Shown in pieces: positions 570-62,701 of a DNA stretch of 64,000 nucleotides. The stretch comes from Podarcis melisellensis (taxonomy: Eukaryota). A program made the position numbers and the translations under genes. The stretch's first letter is position 1, and every line of letters begins with the position of its first letter. Under the pieces are notes generated by a model that saw only the letters and a program-made list of their open reading frames with translations, was not told the origin of the DNA and ran no database searches. Location of the stretch: NCBI GenBank assembly GCA_964234715.1, contig OZ174283.1; one strand, 5' to 3'.

Positions 570-634
570 CTTATTCTTATTTTTCATTAGAAAGAGCAGA
601 TTTCCTTTCAGACGACACCATCTCTCTCTTGGCT
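570..634 (-). CDS. INPP4B: Coding exon 2 of the INPP4-type N-terminal PH domain: (E)PRERWCRLKGNLLFLMKNKNK
   Basis: Acceptor cttttgcatgcag| (AG at 636-635) and donor AAG|gtaatt (GT at 569-568). The 65-nt exon is phase-compatible with the phase-1 end of the upstream exon. RWCRLKGNLLF is a PH beta2-beta3 motif (recalled insect INPP4 RWCKLRGNLLFY). The choice of INPP4B over INPP4A is inference. Confidence 0.8.
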
Positions 635-1272
635 CTGCATGCAAAAGCAGCATAGTATTAATAATAATGACGATGATGAAGATAACAATAAATAATACCC
701 TCCTCTCTTCATATATTTCTTCTTAAAGAAGATGCATTTCTAATGACATTTAATGGGGAAGTCATTAATGAAAAATCAGCTTCACTTGGCAGCTGACTTA
801 TAACATGCTGCTAAATGTCAGATTAACTTCCCAGAAGCTTTCAGTTATCCTGCAGCTGACAGAATTAGAGACTGCAGCATACACTCGGTGATGATTTCTT
901 TTGCTTTGTTCCATTTTGCAAAAGGGAACACAGACTGGCTCTTTTGCACGAGACAACCATGCAAACCTTGCTTCAGCAGATGAACCTTACTGGGAAAACT
1001 CAATATTTATTCTTTTCACTGGGTTGTTACAGACTTAATTGATTTATTTTACTCTAAACAACACACATTGTACAGGCAATATTTGGATTATTTTTGTCAT
1101 TTCTAAAAACATCAACACAGTGGTATGAGGACATAAGCACAGGATGGGGTGCTCTGCATGACAAGGTGGGCTAGAATTAAGTTTGTCTTCAGAGATTAAC
1201 ACACTGTGTTAAAAACCAGTGCCAGCCAGAAGCTTCTTAAAGCTGCCCCCCATAAGATAGTGTTCAATATAA

Positions 1273-1635
1273 AAAGGTAAAGGGACCCCTCACAATTAAG
1301 TCCAGTCGCAAATGACTCTGGGGTTGCGGTGCTCATCTCGCTTTACGCCAGTAGGGAGCTGACGTTTGTTCGCAGACAGTTTTTCCAGGTCATGTGGCCA
1401 GCATGACTAAGCCGCTTTTGGTGAAACCAGAGCAGCACACGGAAACGCCGTTTACCTTCCCGCTGGAGCGATACCTATTTATCTACTTGCACTGCCTGCT
1501 TTCAAACTGCTAGGTTGGCAGGAGCTGGGACCGAACAATGGGAGCTCACCTCATCGCGGTGATTCGAATCACCAACCTTTTGATGGGCAAGCCCAAGATG
1601 CACAGTGGTTTAACCCACAGCGCCACCAGTGTCCC
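1273..1635 (-). mobile_element. Sauria SINE, full length
   Basis: tRNA-like head GGGACACTGGTGGCGCTGTGGGTTAAACC and ACCTTT tail. 12-bp TSD tgttcaatataa at 1261-1272 and 1636-1647. Confidence 0.93.
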
Positions 1636-3918
1636 TGTTCAATATAACTAATACCTATTAGAACATCAGAGACTTTTGTCACTTTAAAAGACACTTTAAA
1701 AGTGTAGTGTAGCCCACAAAAACATATGCCATGATAGATTTGCTGGTCTTTAAGGTACCAAAATACCTTATCCAAGTTGACAGGTGTATACTGTATAAAC
1801 ATAGTTGTGTTGGAAGAATAGTTGTAATCAGGAGGGTTACAAGGAAATGAAATGCCGAAAAGACAGACTTGGATATGTTAGAACTCAAATGCATCTGAAA
1901 CCGTTACTGTAACCACTGACAAAGCAAGGTTGAAAACACAAACATCCTGGTATTGGAAAGCTAATTCATGTCCCTAGTGAGTTAAAAAAAAATTAACTTG
2001 ATTCAGGCCACAGGAGATAGAAATGAACTTGATGGGTGGGGTAATAGAAAAATCCAGCTATCTTCAGAAAACTGATCTCCTACATCAGTTATTGCAAAAT
2101 AAATAAAATTTCCATATGCTTCAACTACCTGTTTATCATGAACAGTCCCTATGTCGTAAGCTCTGTTCCATATTTTTGACTTTTGGGAATCCCTTGCTCA
2201 AATATGTTAACAGGCAATACTGTACTACCACTGCCATCTTCCATGGGGTTAAAGCTTCCTCCACATGATCTCTAGAAGTTAAAACTCTGAGTCTACAATC
2301 CCATATTTATTTACCTGGCAGTATAGTAAGTCCTACTGAACCCAGTGGGGTTTCATTCTGATTCAACATGTTTAGGACTGCACTGTGAATGGAGATTGGC
2401 TGTGTCTCAACTCTAGCACACAGTCTAGAGTGAAACAGTCGGTTAGACTACATTTTGTACTGCTGATAATGTATTATCCTTTTGCTAGTAGATGTTTTAC
2501 AGAAAAACAACAATTCTCTTAGCTTGTAAATCACAGGGGTAGGTACAGAGTTCAATGCATAAGGAATGCAGTGGACAATTTACACCAGTATGCAATGGGG
2601 AGCAGGGTGAGGCTTGCAAAATTCTCTTTGGCATGAAATTAGGAGAGTTGCACAGAATGTATTTTTGTCAGTGAAATGTAGGCTGGTATGAATTTCTAGC
2701 ACTGCCAGCAGCAAAAATATGGGGTTCTATCCATTACTGCCTGTGCAGAATTCTGCTCACACAATGTAACTTTCCATTCCTCTCCTCCCCTGCAAGCCCC
2801 CAAAATTTGCTCCAGAGAGTGCTCCAACTCTCTGCAGCAGATTTTGAGGTGGGAGGCTGCAGGACAAGAGAGAAATGAAAAGTTCTGTTGTGGAAGCAGA
2901 AATTTGTAACAAAAGTGGAACAACAGCATTAGGTACAACCCATGGGGTATGATATTTTGTGTAATGCATTCTTTCTAATTTGTCTTGGTTGTTTGCAATG
3001 TATGGGGGTGACTTTATTCTGTTGTTATCTGCTGAAGTGGATTCTTGATACATATATTTTTATTGGTTCTTGGTTATGTTTTGAATTGTGACAGGATGGC
3101 AATGTGCCATTTAATGTATTTGTTGAAATTTCTGTGGGTTGCGAACCACAACATGGAAATGAATGTGGAACAGAGCTAAACAAAGTTAAAATGAAACAAA
3201 AATGAAAAACAGATATGAACATTTCAAGCCCAAATATAGTGATGGTTCCAAAGACAATGACAAGATGGAGTGGTTAGAGGACAACTTTGTACTCTTACTT
3301 GCAACTAAAAAAAACAAAGAGGAAGGTGTGCAAAATAGGCAAATGCATGCAAATTAGTTCAATTTAAGAGGCCACAGAACTCAACTTTTCTTGGCCCAGA
3401 ATTAGGTTAGTTCCATTAAGCGTTTTGACCATCTTGTTGTAGTTGTTAGCATCAAACCAAATGTACTGAGGGAAGAACAAGGGCTGGATGTGAAAATGTG
3501 TAGGCCTTCCCATTCATTTTAGCAGCTCTTTGCACTGCCTGTGCTCCTAAACATGCATAGCACCCAGAAACTAAGCAGAGGCCTGTTTCTCCCCAGCATG
3601 CAGAAAGCATGCAACTTGATAAGTAGTTTGATATAACACACAAGAAGAGAACTTCTCTCATTCCCCTATGTAAATTAATCCAGTTAGCAACCAGCAGCAG
3701 GACTATTACTTTCATCTTTGTTTGCACATACCAGTGAGAGTCTAATCCACCACAGCTATGGCAGAAAAGCAATTACTTAGAAGGTGTTTAGGAGCACTCA
3801 GCCATTAGCAATGAAGAAAACGGATTATACCAGCAAATCTGTGAATACTAAAACAGTCAGCAGACAACAGCTGCCAAACATACGTGCACAGATGATTGCC
3901 AATGCCAACTATTTTTAC

Positions 3919-4030
3919 CTATACGTTTACCATCCCTTAGCATTCTGCATATGGTCAGTTTTCCTTCCTTGTCAAAACAAGATGATGGCCTTCTAGCCAG
4001 AGAAATCAATTCTTTGACATTGTATTGCAT
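3919..4030 (-). CDS. INPP4B: First coding segment of the INPP4-type PH domain: MQYNVKELISLARRPSSCFDKEGKLTICRMLRDGKRI
   Basis: ATG at 4030-4028 within an exon with acceptor ttctgtttttgttttaatgttgcag| (exon start 4129). Donor TAG|gtaaaa (exon end 3919), with an in-frame alternative ATG|gtaaac (exon end 3931). The MxYNxKEL..LA..PS..FDKEG pattern matches the recalled start of invertebrate INPP4 and is related to the PLEKHJ1 start MRYNEKEL. Confidence 0.8.
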
Positions 4031-4129
4031 CTGGCTGATCGTGAAGAAGATGAAGAGGAAACGGATGATAACAGGGATACTAATGAACTGGTTGAAAGTG
4101 AGCAAGATCTTTTCAGCAGACAAGGCCAA
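4031..4129 (-). other. 5' portion (presumed 5' UTR) of the ATG-containing exon
   Basis: Strong polypyrimidine tract with AG at 4131-4130. The 99 nt contain no ATG and are open in the PH frame. Confidence 0.7.
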
Positions 4130-5599
4130 CTGCAACATTAAAACAAAAACAGAAAGGTGTAGTACAAAATTGCATGCTGATGTCTTTCCATAGCTTTTCT
4201 CAGGGTTGCTAGCTAGTTGTTGTTGTTGTTTTAATGTAACTGCCTAGGTGCCTGGGATTTCATGTATCAAGTCATCAATTAAATCTGCATAAGCTTCCAT
4301 ATGAACACAACATTTCTGAGTCAAAAGTCCCCTTCTTTAAATTTTTGGATGATTGCATATCACAGATGGCACTACTTTAGAAGACACATTCCCTTATCTA
4401 CAAAAGAGGAGAAACATATCTTCCAAGATACTGCCTGTCACCTGCAGCTTTGTAAGTGTTCTTATTAGACTATATATATATATATATATACTGTATATAT
4501 ATAGTAGCAGCTTAAAACAGCTAGAGGACAGCAGGTTGAGGGAAAGTGGTCACAAATCCACAGATTTCAATTAGTCTACCTTAAACAGAATACAGCTTTA
4601 TTTCTATAACCACTTACCTGGCAGTAATCCCACTGAACTCCATTGAATGTACGTGTGTGTGTGTATGATTGCTTAATCAATTGCTGAATCTTCTAAAAAA
4701 TGAATTAACTAAAAGGTCATAGTTTTAGTTTTTTCTTGAACTGTAGTTCCTGAGTACAGGCAGTTGTGGGGGTCTTGCTTATCCTAGAGTGAACATCTAA
4801 TATTGCAACAGTCTAGAAGGTCCCTCTAGCGTCCCTCTTTTTACTGCTGAACTACAGCTCCCTTCATCACTGACCATTGTCCATCCTGGCTGGGGCTTAT
4901 GGGAGATGCAGTCCAACAACATCTGGGGAACACTGGGGTTGACATTTACATGGTAGATATCATGTTGCAGAGATCAAGTTTGGCCACTTTTTTTAACAAC
5001 TGGTGCACCATCTTTCTAAAGGCTAAATGTCAGAGACCTTCTAATGTTGTACAATTTCTCAATGGAGCTGTGGCCATCAAAAATATTATTAGGTCTTTAG
5101 AAATAAGACTTATGCTCATCTCCAAACAACAAATATGCTGTTCTGCAACCAGTCTGAATATTTTGTTTAGTAATCCATGCTATTTTACACAACCCCCCCA
5201 CACCCAATTCTTATTACATGTTCCCATTCACACCAGATGTGCCCCTCGGTTTTTGGACATGGTGAATTCAATGCTGATTAAACTCACACAACAGTACTGC
5301 TGCAATCTAATTCACAGCCCTCAAGCCTGCACTTCTTACAACAACCACACTGGGTAATCAATAATGGAACGCCTGGGGTTACATGCAGTTATAACCTTGA
5401 AACAGTGCAAGTCAGGGTCCTAAGAGTTACAAACTAGGAGCCCATAGTTTATTTAGAGCATGGTTTCAAAGGAAAGATCTTTGTAGCTCCAAAATCTAGA
5501 AATGATCTTAATCACTATGGGGAAAAATGACACTCTTGGCTCCAGGTACCATACAGTGGCTGGGTGAGAAAGGATATCTGCAGGTTGATGGAGGCAGAC

Positions 5600-13316: not shown

Positions 13317-14052
13317 GATGCTACCATTCCCAAAACAAATGTGCTGTGCATGTTCCCCTTCAGTCCTGGTACGTGCACTCAGTTCAGCTCATCTTGTCAC
13401 TTGTGAAGACTGCCCTTCATTCAGAGACACTCTATTCTACCCATGAAAGGAGCTCTTAGCAAACAATTATGTGGTATCCGCTGCACTGTAAGAGGCAGGT
13501 CTATCAATGCTACAGCTGTGCTAAGCTCCAAGAATTAAAAATGAATAAACTTGAAGAGATAAAAGGCAAGGTTCCTTCATATCAGTATGGCACACCCCAA
13601 AAGACTAGTTTCACATGCCCCACAAGCCTTGGTTGGCGAAGACATGGAAGAAAGAAAGAATGAAATGAGAAATCTGTGATTTGATATCAGTACTATATTA
13701 ATTGCTAAAAAGCTATTTTCTTTCCACTCCATCTAGTAACTGCACATGCCACTGTTCAAAGCTCACAAATATCTACATAGCTACTTTCTAATTAAAAAGA
13801 TAATACCGCTCCTGAGAACACAACCGTCAAACAAATAAATCTGGAAAAACAGTGTATCCATGCCATTATATTAAGGCGAAGCCATAAATCATTTTAACTG
13901 TGTCTCTGCAGTAACAATACAATGTTAACGGGCAATGACAGTCCCAATTTTAAAAGAATTCCTTATCACATATGGGAGGAATAAGCGGGGGAGGGGGAGA
14001 GAACAAACAAATTCATCAGTACTGATCACTTTAAAAAGTTACTACCTGAAGT

Positions 14053-51960: not shown

Positions 51961-52370
51961 ATTCACTGCAATCCCGCCTCATCTTTCCGGGCAGACGCCT
52001 CGCTTGGTACCCAGCGACAGACATCTCTCTCCTCAATAAGGGAGAGAAAAATGCACGCAGCAGAAAGACCAGGAGGACGAGAAGGGTCTCTCTTTGCGCC
52101 CCCAACCACCACCCCCATCACCGCCCTTTTTAAACTAGTTCTCCCGCCTCGCAGAGGAGGAGAAAACAACTCCAAACACGGTTCTCGCGGAAAGGGCAGG
52201 TAAGGCAAAGCCCGTCTCGAGGGTCCCAGTCGCAGCAGCAGCAGCCCCGGAGCGCCTCTCGCCTCCTCGCGCGCGCCAGGCAACGGAGCCACTGCCAGCC
52301 CCGCGACTCTCGACACCTGCTCCATTCGCCCTCGCTCGCCTGCTTCGGGGTCTCGCACCTGCCCCCGTAC

Positions 52371-52431
52371 CTTCCCTGCCTGCAGCGCCCGCCTCTTCGG
52401 ACTTGTGTTTCCCGCCCGCCTCCCGGCGAAA
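52371..52431 (-). other. Candidate 5' UTR exon 1B (internal or alternative first)
   Basis: Acceptor tttcttcctgttgcag| and donor AAG|gtacgg, with a second donor CAG|gtgcga 12 nt further on (exon end 52359). Confidence 0.4.
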
Positions 52432-52635
52432 CTGCAACAGGAAGAAACTTGAAAGGGGCTCGAGAAGCGGGGTGGGAAAACAGAGGCGACTTTCGCCTCA
52501 GACTAGCCCTCCGTCGGCGGCGGCGGCCGCAGCAGTCGCCCACCCGCGCTTGCCTAAGGCGCCCTCTCTCTCTCTCTCTCTCTCTCAGGAAACCGCCCCG
52601 GCGAAAGAGAGGGACGGGTCTGAGTTTGTTTTTAC

Positions 52636-52705
52636 CTGCGCTGCCTCCCCGCGAAGGCGCCGCTCGCCCGCCTGCCCGCCTGCGTCCGTCTCCAGTCTGT
52701 GGCAC
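52636..52705 (-). other. Candidate non-coding first exon 1A
   Basis: Lies downstream of the TATA box and ends at donor CAG|gtaaaa (GT at 52635-52634). Confidence 0.55.
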
Positions 52706-52726
52706 GCAAGGACTCCGTAGCCTCTG

Positions 52727-52735
52727 CTATTTATA
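52727..52735 (-). promoter_or_regulatory. TATA box (TATAAATAG); predicted TSS about 52705-52700
   Basis: Consensus TATAWAW in GC-rich context, about 100 nt upstream of the donor at 52635. Confidence 0.6.
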
Positions 52736-55700
52736 GTCCGCAGCTCCTCGCCAACCCCTGGCCAAGCGGGAGAGAGGAGCTGCAAGGGAAAGCAGCGGGG
52801 GCGAGACTCAGCGGGCTTCCGCGCTCTCCTGCCAGCCAGCCAGCCGGGCGGCCACCGCCAGCGCGCCTCAGAGCCTCCGCGCCGAGTCGAGGGGGCTGCT
52901 TCGCTGCAGCTGCTCGCACAAGCCAGAGGCGCAAAGCGAGGCGCGCGCGTTCCTTCCCCTCGGTAGCGCCGCCTCCCGCCAGCCGAGTCTCCGCCTCCTC
53001 TTTTTTTGCCTCCTTCCTCCAATGTCACCGCAGCTCGACGGAGGCTCCCGAGCTCTGCAGGAGGCCAACCCCAGGAGCGACGGCCGGTGCCCAAGGGCGC
53101 ACGCGCCGCAAGAGACGCGAGGCCGGCGCGCGATGCTCCGCTGCTTTCCCTCTCGCGCTCTCTGGCACCGCAACGCTGAGCTCAGAGGTGACCCGGGCGA
53201 GAGGCGGGCAGCAAGCAGCTGTGACTTGCCGTGCGCCTCCCGGAGTCTAGGGGGCGCTCGCTTCTTGCTGTGAGCTCCCTGGAGAACCAGAGGGTGAGAA
53301 AGAGAGAGTGCCCTCTACTGGGAACTCAAAAGGCTGCGTTTTCAGGTGGTTTCCCCTCCTCCCCTCTCAACTAGCGTCCTATCTCAGGAAGTAGGCTGGC
53401 AGCACGTTTGAAAAGAATAATAAATGAGCTGCCAAGGTTTTTGACAATTATCTGGCACATAGCCATGTTTGAAGATGCCTGCCAGAGAAAATATTGGCAA
53501 CTTTACTCACTGGTCTCATCTGAAGGATGAATGAGATAAAAGATTGTTAGAAAACCCCATAATTTTCAAAGGGTTGAGTAAATTGCAAACATGCATTTTA
53601 TTTTTCCATTATGCTTACAGTCTACTCTTATATCAGATCTCCCAAGATGTCTTCAAGTGTTTCCCTACACACTGTTAACATCACATGAGGGGAGAGAGCA
53701 GGGGTCCACCATCCTCCCCATCTTGGCTGTTGTCCCCCCCCCCCATCCATGTTGGAGGATTTACCTCTGCAGCAGGATCTTGTTCCACCCATGTAGGCTC
53801 CTGCAGGATTTTGAAGGCTGATCTTCCAGGGTTTAAAATCATACTGTAATCCGGCACATGTCAAGTAAGCTCTCCTTGGATGAATTTCGCAAGAAGGCAA
53901 GATTTGCCCTGATAGATGAGACCAGTGGCCCATCTAGTCCAGCTGTTCTCATGGTGACCAACCAGATGTCTGTGAGAAGCTTGAAATCAGGACCTCAGTG
54001 CAACAAATGACATTCAGAGGCATGCTACCTTCTACAGCCACCAACACATGGGGACCTGTGGGAGTGGTGACAGTGATGCCACAAGTGGGGCCAAGGAGTG
54101 CACCCCCACGCTCTCCTCTTGTGTAATTGCATAAGGGGTGATGCCTCACTAGGAGTGCTTCCAGACTGTCTATATTTTGCAGGGGAAACATTGAAAAACG
54201 TTGGGTGAATTAATGACCAACAGGGAGTATAAATACAGTACCCACAAGCAAATCAGAGTGCATGCAGAATTCAACGTCATATTACTGCCCAGTAAACAAA
54301 TCAAAATGAATGCTCAATATGGATCAGACACAATCGAACCACTGGGTAAACTTTGCAAAAGCAGATCAGGATAAATGCTGAGTGAACAGGTAGCCTGGAG
54401 GAGCTCTCAGTCTTCAGGAAGTTCAAGGGCCTGAACAAGTCCACACCTACAGAAATGCTACATTTTCAGCAATGCTGCAGCTGCAGATGTTCCCATATCA
54501 GTCATTGAACCCACTCTCATTCCTTCTGTTAGTAAAGTGTGTGTTTTGCGCTTGAGTGGAGAATATTGGCAGGTGACGTTAATGGGTAGAGAGCAGAACA
54601 GGGAAATATGGGAGGTCCAAATGATTCTCTGTCTCCCCCTGGTGGTATCTCAAAGGTTGTACATATGCACTACCCCTCGTACTGCCAAGGGATGTTGGCA
54701 TAGAAGGGTAGCATGGTGGTGAGAGTACTTAATTTTGGCCTGCCATTTGCTTCATTTAAGTGTGTGGTCCAAAACATGACAGCAAATTCATCTCAGAAGA
54801 CACATGGCCATTTTTAGCAGACAAACAACATGAGAGGAAAGTGCTAAAAGAAAATTGTGTGCTGATCTTTGGCTTATGTTTTGCATCTCTGCAGCTGCAT
54901 TTTGTAAAACAATAGGGACTGTTGGGCCCTTAATGGCCAGCTCCAATTTAGTAAGCTTTTTTAATGGACGGAAGCCTTGTGCCTTTAATAGGTTTATGAC
55001 TGCAGAATTGTTAGGTTCAGTCCTGCTCTCCTGCCTTCAACAATAGCCTGAGAAATTTAGCTTATCTCAGTTCTCAATCTCTGTGCTAAGAAAAGCTTCA
55101 CCTGGTAAATGTCTATATGACAAGTTGTTCTAAAGCTTCAGAAGAAGGGTCAGTAAAAGGGTGGAGAAGGGGAGCCGTAATCTATTCATTAGTAAAGGAA
55201 GATAGGCTTATTTGGAAAGGGTATCTTTGCAGTCAATCAAGTCTTCATGTCATACAATATATAGCTGAGCTTTTGACATACTCTAAGAGGGGTGTCCAAT
55301 ATCAACAAGTCTCTGAACTTGCTGCTATTGCTCAGATGCTGATGGTGGCATTGTCCAAGATGGTGGCATAGCCCTTAGACCACGATCTGCCCCATCATGT
55401 AGAAAGTGAGGATTGCACCCAATGTTCTCTATGAGAAGAGGTTATGTGGAATATTCCAACTCATGCAAAATCCAGCTGTTTGGGGTGCAGCAGATTCTTC
55501 TCCAATAGCTGTCGGTCTGTTTCAGGGCACAATTCAAAGTGCTGCTTCAGGTTATCACCCTTAAAGTCTTAGAACCAGGATACCTTATGGGTGCACCATC
55601 TCTCCTTGCAAACAACCCAATCCATTGAGTTCAGCAGGAGGTCCCCCTTTGTGTGTCCTGTCACTGTCTAAAGTGTGAGAAGTGGGAACAATGAAGCTGG

Positions 55701-57539: not shown

Positions 57540-57866
57540 CAAAGGTCAGCAAACTTTTTCAGCAGGTGGCCAGTCCACTGTCCCTCAGACCTTGTAGGGG
57601 GCCGGACTATATTTTTTTTGGGGGGGGAGGAATGAAGGAATTCCTATGCCCCACAAATAACCCAGAGATGCATTTTAAATAAAAGCACACATTCTACTCA
57701 TGTAAAAACACCAGCAGGCCCCACAAATAACCCAGAGACGCATTTTAAATAAAAGGACACATTCTACTCATGTAAAAACATGCTGATTCCCGGACCATCT
57801 GTGGGCCGGATTTAGAAGGCGATTGGCCCAGATCTGGCCCCCTGGGCCTTAGTTTGCCTACCCATG
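57540..57866. mobile_element. Non-autonomous hAT element with internal 70-bp-period duplication
   Basis: Ends caaaggtcagcaaact and agtttgcctacccatg. The duplicated unit starts at 57648 and 57718. Confidence 0.75.
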
Positions 57867-60800
57867 GAATAAGCTTTACAGCCTTTACACAATGTGCTCC
57901 AATGGTCCTTAGTGACAACTTTGCACAGAGAAACACAATGTATAAAACAGGATTCTGCAATGGCTTTCTTAGTTGCAATTCACCCACTTGCTGAAGCATT
58001 TTTGAGATGCCATAATCAAGGGGATACTTGCTTCAAAGCTTCACCTTTCCATTTGTGTGTGTGGGGGGGAAACAGTTTACAGCATGTGACAGTGTGTTAC
58101 GGGAATGTACCTGTAGAGACAGTCAGGGCACATTGCATGGAGGTTCTGTGAACCAATCCTTAAGTAACACAGAATGCCAAGGGCGGGGAATGCATTTGCC
58201 ACACGTTGCTGGAAATTATCACTTTTGGAAATTCCAATCGAGCAACATCTCCTACAAAAACCACAAAATGCTGGAAACATTAGTCAGTTCCTGGGTGGGG
58301 ATTCATATGCAGAGAGCATGTGTTTAAGGGTTTTAGTTTTCAAGGCATCAGCTTATAATGCATCAAACTCAGGATCCAGGCATCACACCTCAAGGAAGCT
58401 TTTCTACTTATGAGAGCATTTCATGAGAGCTTATGTTCTCATGCAAAGAGAAGATTCATGAAGAGAGCAGAAACCTGACTAGTGTCAAATACAGTACAAA
58501 AGAGCATCACCATGAATGAGACTTCAGAGCAATGCTGCTGAGGTGAAACTGACACAGATCATCTCCAAACTGTCTTCATATTCATCAGTTTCTGTTCCCT
58601 TGTCCTCAATCCCTCTTAGTAGGCTGAGCACTCGCATGGGTGCTGGACTGCACCTCATCTAACCTTTGAAAGAGAACAAAGCCATCACTCCCCAAGGCAA
58701 GACTAACCTCTGACATGTGGAATAGACAGAGCTTTTGAACTGGGGTTTTCAGGACTATACCATAAAAGCTAAGGCAATGTTGAGAGCACACTTTGAAGAG
58801 ATCCTCTGAATGCATGGTTCCTGGGCAGGTAAAGTGCGGCTTCTGAATTGGAATATTATTTCAGGTCTCCTTCATGCCCTCCATTTTCTCCAAAGTTTTC
58901 TCCCTTGACAAAAGATGTTTCGATTTTTTTTTGCTTCGTTCTCAAGGCACTTCAGGATTTCAGACAGTGTGAGATTTTGAGCTAGCCTTATCATTTTATT
59001 CTGTCCTCTCTTGGCCACAAAGAGGAACAGAAGCAATGGTAAGGCTTGCAGCTAGTATACCTAGCCCCAAATCTTTGAAGGAGAAGGCAGAGGTTCCCCA
59101 CTGTTGCGGAAGAAGTAATTCTCCAGGAGGGGAATGTAACAGTGATTGGGAGGCAGTATTGTGGTCATGCGACTGCAACGCATGGTGAATGTGCCTTGTA
59201 AGCACCCTACAGCTTTAAACATTTGGTGTGCTATATGTAGAGCTGGAAACTTCAGCTTCTTTTTTTGTCTGAAACCTCTTGTTAACTTCTGCTACAACCA
59301 CAATTTGACTTCAAATTACTGCTTACAGCGTCCTGAGCTAGGTTACAAGCATCTGATATTGACAGTTGGAGGAAGCTGTTAGAATGTATAATTAAACTCA
59401 CTGCTTATCTGCTTTATGCAGTCGACAGTAGTTAATATATAACTAGGGGAATGCCCATCATTATGATGTGTGAAGGTTAAAGGGAGGGCTTGTAAACTGC
59501 AATGATACATTAGATACACCCCCTCCCCAATGGGGACTTGGCTGTCAGACCACACAGTGGCAGGCATGGGGTTTTATCTATTCCAACATTCTTGCCAATT
59601 TAGAATGGCCAGCATTATTTTTTCTTGCATTTGTTCATTAGCAGTGTAGAAAACAGAGTTTAAAAGCTCTGCCTACTAAGTTCTGTGTGTCAGGCTGTTG
59701 TTAAAAGGCACAGGAACAGAGCTGGTGCCATAGCTGGCAACCATGTACCAACTGGAACACGCTTACTTTATCTGGGAGAAATAAATTCTGCCACTATTGG
59801 GGTAAGGATTAAGGGAGACCTACCTTCCCTCCCAGACACTGTGGTGAGCCGTGTCTGTGATGACAGAGGCATCCACAGGAGGCCCTCCGTTGAAGATACT
59901 AATGTATGGACAGGTGCATATGGAGACAGGCTGTTCTTTGAGTACCCAAGTCCTAAGCTCTGAAGTGATCTAAATATCAAAACCAGAACTTTGAATCAGA
60001 ATCCGTCTTCATCCTGTGAGGGCTGTCCTTAAAACTATCAATAGGAAAGCAAAATAAATTATTGGTAATATAATTTAAAAGGAACAAAAAAAAGCAATGA
60101 TATTTGCCACAGTATTCCGGGAAAGTACCTTCTGCTAAAAGAGAGTCATGCGAAGAGGAACAGGGTTATGTTCCAAAGCAAATGCACGCGCCACAGCACT
60201 GGTTGTAACTACTTCACTAATGGAATGCCCTGCTATTCTGTTGGCCTTTGCTTTAGCCTCGTTTTATTTATTTTTTAGATTCTTCCAAGTCTGTGTACTC
60301 CCTCTCTGCTGGAGCACAGATCTTGCCACGTTTCTGAAAGTGGGACATAAGGGAGCAGCCTCGTAATTTACAAGCAGTCTCTCACAACCAGTGCCACAAT
60401 CCGTTATGAGATGTTGCCCTTCTGTCACTGAATTGCGGGAGGATGTGCTTTGACAGATCATGCAGAAAGGCCAAGTTTGCTTATCCAATGAGTGCTTGAT
60501 GCCTGAGAGACTTTGCAATGGATTTTTAATGGCACTAAGTGTGTTTTTGTTTCGTTGCATGTTTGATTTCAGTGTGTCGGGGGCAGGAATAAAAAAGGTG
60601 CTCTGTCTTCTTAGGTGTAAACTGTCTTTTTTGCAGCCAAGTCCCACTCAGTCTGCTTTCAGGAAGAGGCATACATTGCACAGACATGTATCAAATGCAC
60701 CCAGGAACAGCAGGGGAAACACTGGTTTAATGAAAATGAGCCGTCCAGCCACATACTTTAAAATACATATACTGAATATATTAACAACACAGAGGGAAGC

Positions 60801-62327: not shown

Positions 62328-62504
62328 CAGGGGTGGGGAACTGTTTTCAGACTAATCGCCACATCTCCTTGTGAGCAATGTTCTGGGGAGGGTGGCTGCA
62401 TGACCCTGGCATGTGGGGCCAGAGGTAAAAGTGGGTGGAGCAACACATGTGACTCTCAGCTTGGTACATTTGGTTATACTACAGCAGCCATTCAAAATCC
62501 AGAG

Positions 62505-62540
<36 letters not shown>

Positions 62541-62701
62541 CCAGACTCCATCCTGGGAGACAAGACATTCCATCAAAGCAAAAGCACTCAAGGCTACATA
62601 GCAGAGATGGTGAGGGTTGTGATCTGAGGACAGTCCCAGGACCAAACAGAGAGACTTAGAGGGCTGCATTTGGCCCCTGAACCTGAGATTCCCCAGCCCT
62701 G
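62328..62701. mobile_element. Non-autonomous hAT element with internal (CA)n
   Basis: Ends caggggtggggaac and attccccagccctg. TSD atgtagag/atccagag. Confidence 0.7.

Follow-up and report, generated by a model that had tools for sequence, protein, structure and literature searches.

Signalling through phosphatidylinositol 3,4-bisphosphate (PI(3,4)P2) is terminated by the inositol polyphosphate 4-phosphatases INPP4A and INPP4B, the latter being a tumour suppressor. The canonical mammalian proteins of both begin close to their C2 domain. The description of an NCBI CDD model, PH_INPP4A_INPP4B, places a PH domain in front of a C2 domain. PLEKHJ1 and PHETA1/2 are small proteins encoded by compact genes. 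They start with the motif M-[RKQ]-[YFL]-N-x-[KR]-[ED]-L, have the beta1 strand 10-15 residues later and continue with beta2-beta3 strands of the type R-W-x-x-L-x-G-N-[LM]-L-F. In this study we analysed 64,000 nucleotides of the lizard Podarcis melisellensis (contig OZ174283.1 of assembly GCA_964234715.1), a stretch which we call the window, and describe two small exons on its minus strand. Our favoured reading, to which we assign a probability of roughly 0.55, is that a large multi-exon gene on the minus strand begins its coding sequence with these two exons, that they encode the start of a PH domain and that the host gene is most likely INPP4.

The peptide encoded by the two exons likewise combines a start motif of the PLEKHJ1 and PHETA1/2 kind, a putative beta1 strand at that distance and putative beta2-beta3 strands of that type. 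In the stretch from the start motif to beta2 the peptide departs from PLEKHJ1/PHETA, and in contrast to the compact PLEKHJ1/PHETA genes the present locus has introns of 48 kb and 3.3 kb. INPP4B is a very large gene whose 5' exons are untranslated and whose first intron is long, a layout which the locus fits. Unlike INPP4A/B, the window shows neither a C2 exon nor exons for the linker or the CX5R phosphatase.

The only annotated model that holds the first of the two exons is XP_028600394.1 of Podarcis muralis, a RefSeq model named "uncharacterized protein LOC114604459", which is 97% identical over 36 residues of this exon. The model supplies the upstream exons and the acceptor between 4130 and 4129. 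Unlike in our gene model, its GC-rich 5' exons are translated and the donor at 3919 is read through.

Two minus-strand exons and the probable start of a PH domain

The first coding exon (exon 1) opens with the ATG at 4030 and consists of 37 codons and one further base (g). It is followed after 3919 by the donor g/gtaaaa, which leaves it in phase 1. The second coding exon (exon 2) is preceded by the acceptor ttttgcatgcag directly before 634. With the initial ag of exon 2 the split codon becomes GAG (Glu), after which 21 codons lead to the donor aag/gtaatt after 570, in phase 0. Exon 1, the split Glu and the rest of exon 2 add up to 59 residues, both exons are free of stop codons, their phases are compatible and the 64-kb window contains no N. 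The original prediction had proposed exactly these two exons, with canonical splice sites, fitting phases and a stop-free join of 59 amino acids. Our reading of the minus strand agrees with it, both translated pieces being as claimed with the split Glu between them, and the two small exons are confirmed as real. The coordinates and translations are collected in Table 1.

The sequence motifs of the peptide follow the layout of the beginning of a PH domain. Its N-terminal segment ahead of beta1 has the form M-x-[YF]-N-x-K-[ED]-L, a start motif which we take to be of the PLEKHJ1 / sesquipedalian-PHETA type. The candidate for beta1 is KEGKLTICR, a K-E-G-x-L strand, and it is separated by a basic loop of 12 residues (MLRDGKRIEPRE) from the candidate for beta2-beta3 on exon 2, RWCRLKGNLLF (R-W-x-x-L-x-G-N-L-L-F). 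Contacts to the phosphoinositide head group are made by residues of the beta1-beta2 loop in those PH domains that bind lipids. A beta1 strand of the form K/R-x-G-x-L, a basic loop and a beta2-beta3 segment with R/K-W-x-x-L and a later hydrophobic-hydrophobic-F/Y are all present in the peptide at the usual spacing.

The beta2-beta3 pattern is rare in the window. Searching the six-frame translation of the 64 kb for [RK]W..L..(.)[LIVM][LIVM][FY] gave one occurrence, where 0.16 are expected from shuffled sequences. This single occurrence is found on the strand of the conserved ATG exon and 3.3 kb further downstream, is bordered by an AG and a GT and has the fitting phase. The beta1 (KEGKL) and beta2-beta3 motifs named in the original prediction are found in the arrangement of a PH domain start, the latter being unique in the window. 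From this layout it is plausible that the 59 residues represent the start, or first third, of a PH domain. Only 569 bases of the window follow exon 2, and positions 1-569 contain nothing that resembles the remaining PH domain (beta4-beta7 and the C-terminal helix with its conserved Trp). The remainder of the PH domain would thus have to be encoded to the left of the window.

Conservation of the start-codon exon

We searched exon 1 with phmmer against 1.84 billion cluster representatives and found three real matches, all of which are genomic read-through open reading frames (ORFs). P0001 is an ORF of a close relative (locus L005, 96.6% nucleotide identity), P0002 is the Podarcis muralis model XP_028600394.1, and P0003 is an ORF on four short contigs (L001-L004) of a much more distant species. 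Three further hits (P0004-P0006) are repeat proteins, which were rejected as spurious matches caused by summed repeats. A scan of metagenomes added three more loci. L006 is host DNA on a 16-kb contig from a relative of the species of P0003; it carries an orthologue of exon 1 and ends 1.5 kb after it. L007 (contig JAAUXV010144092.1, positions 2584-2704) comes from a eukaryote and holds a far more distant homologous start-codon exon, MRYNAKELAFIAEQPAKFFTKEGPLYMRTSQGHVWHRKKD, followed by one base and then gtaagt. It shares with exon 1 the start motif, the K-E-G-x-L spacing and the donor in phase 1, and about 330 bases of the contig follow. The third locus, L008, is bacterial and methyltransferase-like and was set aside as a chance match.

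To the two more distant reptile-like sequences the amino acid identity of exon 1 is 65-73%. In both L001 and L006 the 112 coding bases align to the window without any indel and the ATG and the donor ATAG/GTA are kept, with indels of 3, 5 and 1 bases found in the flanks on both sides of the exon. The nucleotide identity is 73% in exon 1 and 63-67% in the 100 bases on either side of it. Compared with the window, the ratio of non-synonymous to synonymous substitution rates (dN/dS) of exon 1 is 0.38 for L001 and 0.27 for L006. Overall, four independent sequences that represent two lineages retain exon 1, with its ATG, frame and donor intact. Loss of the frame in other sauropsids had been listed in the original prediction as an outcome that would overturn it, and the other reptile sequences preserve the frame of exon 1. 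These comparisons support that exon 1 behaves as a conserved start-codon exon.

Aligning 11.6 kb of L006 with the first 20 kb of the window gave two alignable blocks only, one of which is a 400-base block around exon 1. The other block is found at 13758-13949 of the window (L006:1236-1427). It comprises 190 AT-rich bases with 72.5% identity, contains TAAT-type motifs and no open frame, and is probably an intronic enhancer.

A number of observations weigh against a coding PH domain start. Several of them would instead fit a conserved transcript, non-coding or with a short ORF, that includes exon 1 and stops in the next intron, as in the Podarcis muralis model. The open frame and exon 2 would then be fortuitous, an explanation which we consider quite improbable. 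The differences between exon 1 and the distant lineage are spread over the three codon positions as 8/11/11 and 8/7/11, without a concentration at the third position. Between L001 and L006 there are six non-synonymous changes and one synonymous change in exon 1, so that dN/dS is above 1 for these seven changes. Over about 130 bases in either direction, the flanks are conserved almost as well as the exon itself (63-67% vs 73%), and a core of 26 bases (CFDKEGKL) shows no difference, not even at silent sites. The silent-site identity of the core together with the conservation of the flanks indicates that part of the constraint may act on the nucleotide sequence, and the codon-type substitution signal of exon 1 is modest.

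Transcript and protein evidence belong to the same side of the balance. In three RNA-seq runs of a related species, of which about 12% each was read, there was no read on exon 1 and one unspliced read across exon 2, and none of the reads across the 3919 to 634 junction that the original prediction called for was found; the SINE-like repeat of the intron was the only part covered. With about 12% of each run read and with tissue and expression level unspecified, this missing coverage is absence of evidence and not evidence of silence. XP_028600394.1 passes through the 3919 donor into the intron. No relatives of exon 2 were retrieved: the 42-aa ORF around it gave only itself or nothing, and no contig reaches it. 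The contig searches with P0001-P0003, with the window ORFs around both exons and with the ORFs of L006 returned short contigs or nothing, and L001-L007 all end before any exon beyond exon 1. Searching Pfam with each exon singly (37 and 21 aa) gave no family at E<=10, the PDB sequence search with each exon and with a five-sequence profile gave nothing or chance matches only, and there was no usable match among the ESM Atlas look-alikes of exon 1. The lack of Pfam, PDB and Atlas matches is expected because the pieces are only 21-37 residues long.

A fortuitous open frame is difficult to reconcile with the intact ATG, frame and donor in all four sequences, where frame-breaking indels are confined to the flanks, and with a dN/dS of 0.27-0.38 across the deep split. 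It also fits poorly with the start motif, K-E-G-x-L spacing and donor phase of L007 and with a unique PH-type RW..L..LLF motif that lies 3.3 kb downstream between AG and GT borders in the right phase. In our favoured reading of two coding exons, the splicing of exon 1 to exon 2 is inferred.

Upstream exons and the proposed transcription unit

Mapping XP_028600394.1 onto the window places the upstream exons of its model at about 58 kb and 53 kb (Table 1), and an intron of 48 kb precedes the first coding exon. The model joins the 58-kb and 53-kb exons to the acceptor between 4130 and 4129, which places the ATG exon inside a long transcription unit. The 48-kb intron ahead of the first coding exon points to a large gene and not to a compact gene of the PLEKHJ1/PHETA type. 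The AG at 4130 is absent in L001, and a second candidate acceptor, gatcag, is found between 4035 and 4034. The GC fraction is 0.59 at 52-54 kb, where a CpG island is found (52000-53300), and the gene lies in DNA of 40% GC. The exon or exons at 52588..53290, which lie in this island, are probable promoter-proximal 5' untranslated region (UTR) of the same transcription unit.

In front of the ATG, 3- and 5-base indels relative to L001 show that the frame is not maintained. We therefore interpret the GC-rich "protein" part of XP_028600394.1 as 5' UTR and take the ATG at 4030, which is the first in its exon, as the likely true start. XP_028600394.1 is probably an incorrectly modelled 5' piece of a larger gene, and its translated leader looks like an annotation artefact.

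According to the gene model that we propose, transcription would start at the CpG island about 48-54 kb upstream, and one or two untranslated exons would be spliced onto the exon 4129..3919, with translation from the ATG at 4030. Exon 1 would then be joined to the exon 634..570, and the transcript would continue past the left edge of the window.

Table 1. Features of the proposed gene start in the 64-kb window of Podarcis melisellensis, including the mapped parts of the Podarcis muralis model.
Feature	Position	Strand	Remarks
Start-codon exon (exon 1), coding part	3919..4030	-	MQYNVKELISLARRPSSCFDKEGKLTICRMLRDGKRI (37 residues); phase 1; ATG and ATAG/GTA donor kept, indel-free in L005, L001-L004 and L006
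Second coding exon (exon 2), 65 bases	570..634	-	phase 1 in, phase 0 out; PRERWCRLKGNLLFLMKNKNK (21 codons after the split Glu); bears PH beta2-beta3-like motif
Intron between exon 1 and exon 2, 3284 bases	635..3918	-	splice sites read; contains SINE-like repeat at about 1259-1669
Probable 5' untranslated part of exon 1	4031..4129	-	acceptor ttgcag between 4130 and 4129, used by the Podarcis muralis model
XP_028600394.1 residues 265-358	4132..3851	-	holds exon 1, continues past the 3919 donor
XP_028600394.1 residues 48-282	53290..52588	-	inside CpG island; joined to the exon at 4129 in the model
XP_028600394.1 residues 5-60	58002..57835	-	most upstream exon; tblastn, 87.5% identity

Besides these features, the intron between the two coding exons contains a repeat resembling a short interspersed nuclear element (SINE) at 1259-1669. 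RNA and DNA coverage are both very deep there: the RNA-seq depth is hundreds-fold, the depth of contigs is huge, and variants and loose ends are numerous in all four sequencing runs. This repeat is multi-copy and transcribed somewhere in the genome. In a run of 2017 of uncertain kind (X1), the bin 574-710, which holds exon 2, has a word depth of 13.5 compared with 2-5 in the adjoining bins. At about 62400-62700 there is a TG/CA dinucleotide microsatellite, which is seen as a CVCVCVCV run in the ORF translation. Searching the window against Rfam gave no match.

The host gene

The most likely host of the two exons would be an INPP4 phosphatase (A or B), in which the PH domain would act as a membrane or partner targeting module ahead of the C2 domain. 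The gene and domain layouts described above together with the circumstances of the locus put the identity of the host as INPP4A or INPP4B at about even odds. We found no INPP4 C2 or phosphatase exon within the 64-kb window, and none of the database proteins or contigs retrieved links INPP4 to the two exons, which counts against this host. The phmmer search of the 1.84 billion representatives gave no INPP4 protein with exon 1, although a long INPP4 could sit behind a representative that lacks the exon. Homologous-protein searches with the carriers P0002 and P0001 gave only themselves or nothing. Our literature search yielded no paper about an INPP4 PH domain, about the name or number of the CDD model PH_INPP4A_INPP4B or about LOC114604459. 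If the CDD model is as described, the PH-C2-phosphatase architecture is already present in the domain databases and the searchable literature is silent about it.

The same lack of INPP4 sequences among the retrieved proteins and contigs and in the window would be explained if the exons are real and encode a PH start, but in another gene with a PLEKHJ1/PHETA-like N-terminal PH domain, possibly one that is unannotated or lost in mammals. This we see as possible but unlikely. It would agree with the N-terminal motif, which matches PLEKHJ1/PHETA proteins that are not phosphatases, and with the Podarcis muralis exon being kept by NCBI in a separate 'uncharacterized' locus and not in an INPP4 gene. 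What speaks against an annotated small stand-alone PH protein, of about 150-260 aa, is that in a collection of 5.8 billion proteins there was no protein of 99-626 aa with exon 1 except for the two read-through ORFs, nor was there one among the 50% cluster representatives. The original prediction had listed a stand-alone PLEKHJ1/PHETA-like protein with exon 1 as an outcome that would overturn it, and in this size range no such protein appeared. Introns of 48 kb and 3.3 kb in AT-rich DNA and a sequence after the start motif that is unlike PLEKHJ1 also argue against a gene of that family.

With INPP4 as our preferred host, the original prediction stands in part. Its exons with their fitting phases, the conserved start exon and the layout of a PH start were recovered, while the match to INPP4 and the junction reads were not. 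A further-reaching version is tentative and rather doubtful. It holds that the INPP4 of squamates, and by inference that of the vertebrate ancestor, carries a PLEKHJ1/PHETA-type PH domain before the C2 domain, and that this PH domain is missing from the canonical mammalian proteins and from the INPP4 literature.

The present value of the analysis is a corrected gene start, as the RefSeq annotation of a related lizard models this partly conserved PH-gene start poorly. If the further-reaching version is true, the PI(3,4)P2 phosphatase would possess a second targeting module, which mammals would have lost or silenced. A PH domain added to INPP4 outside mammals would be relevant to the targeting of these enzymes and to what mammals have lost.

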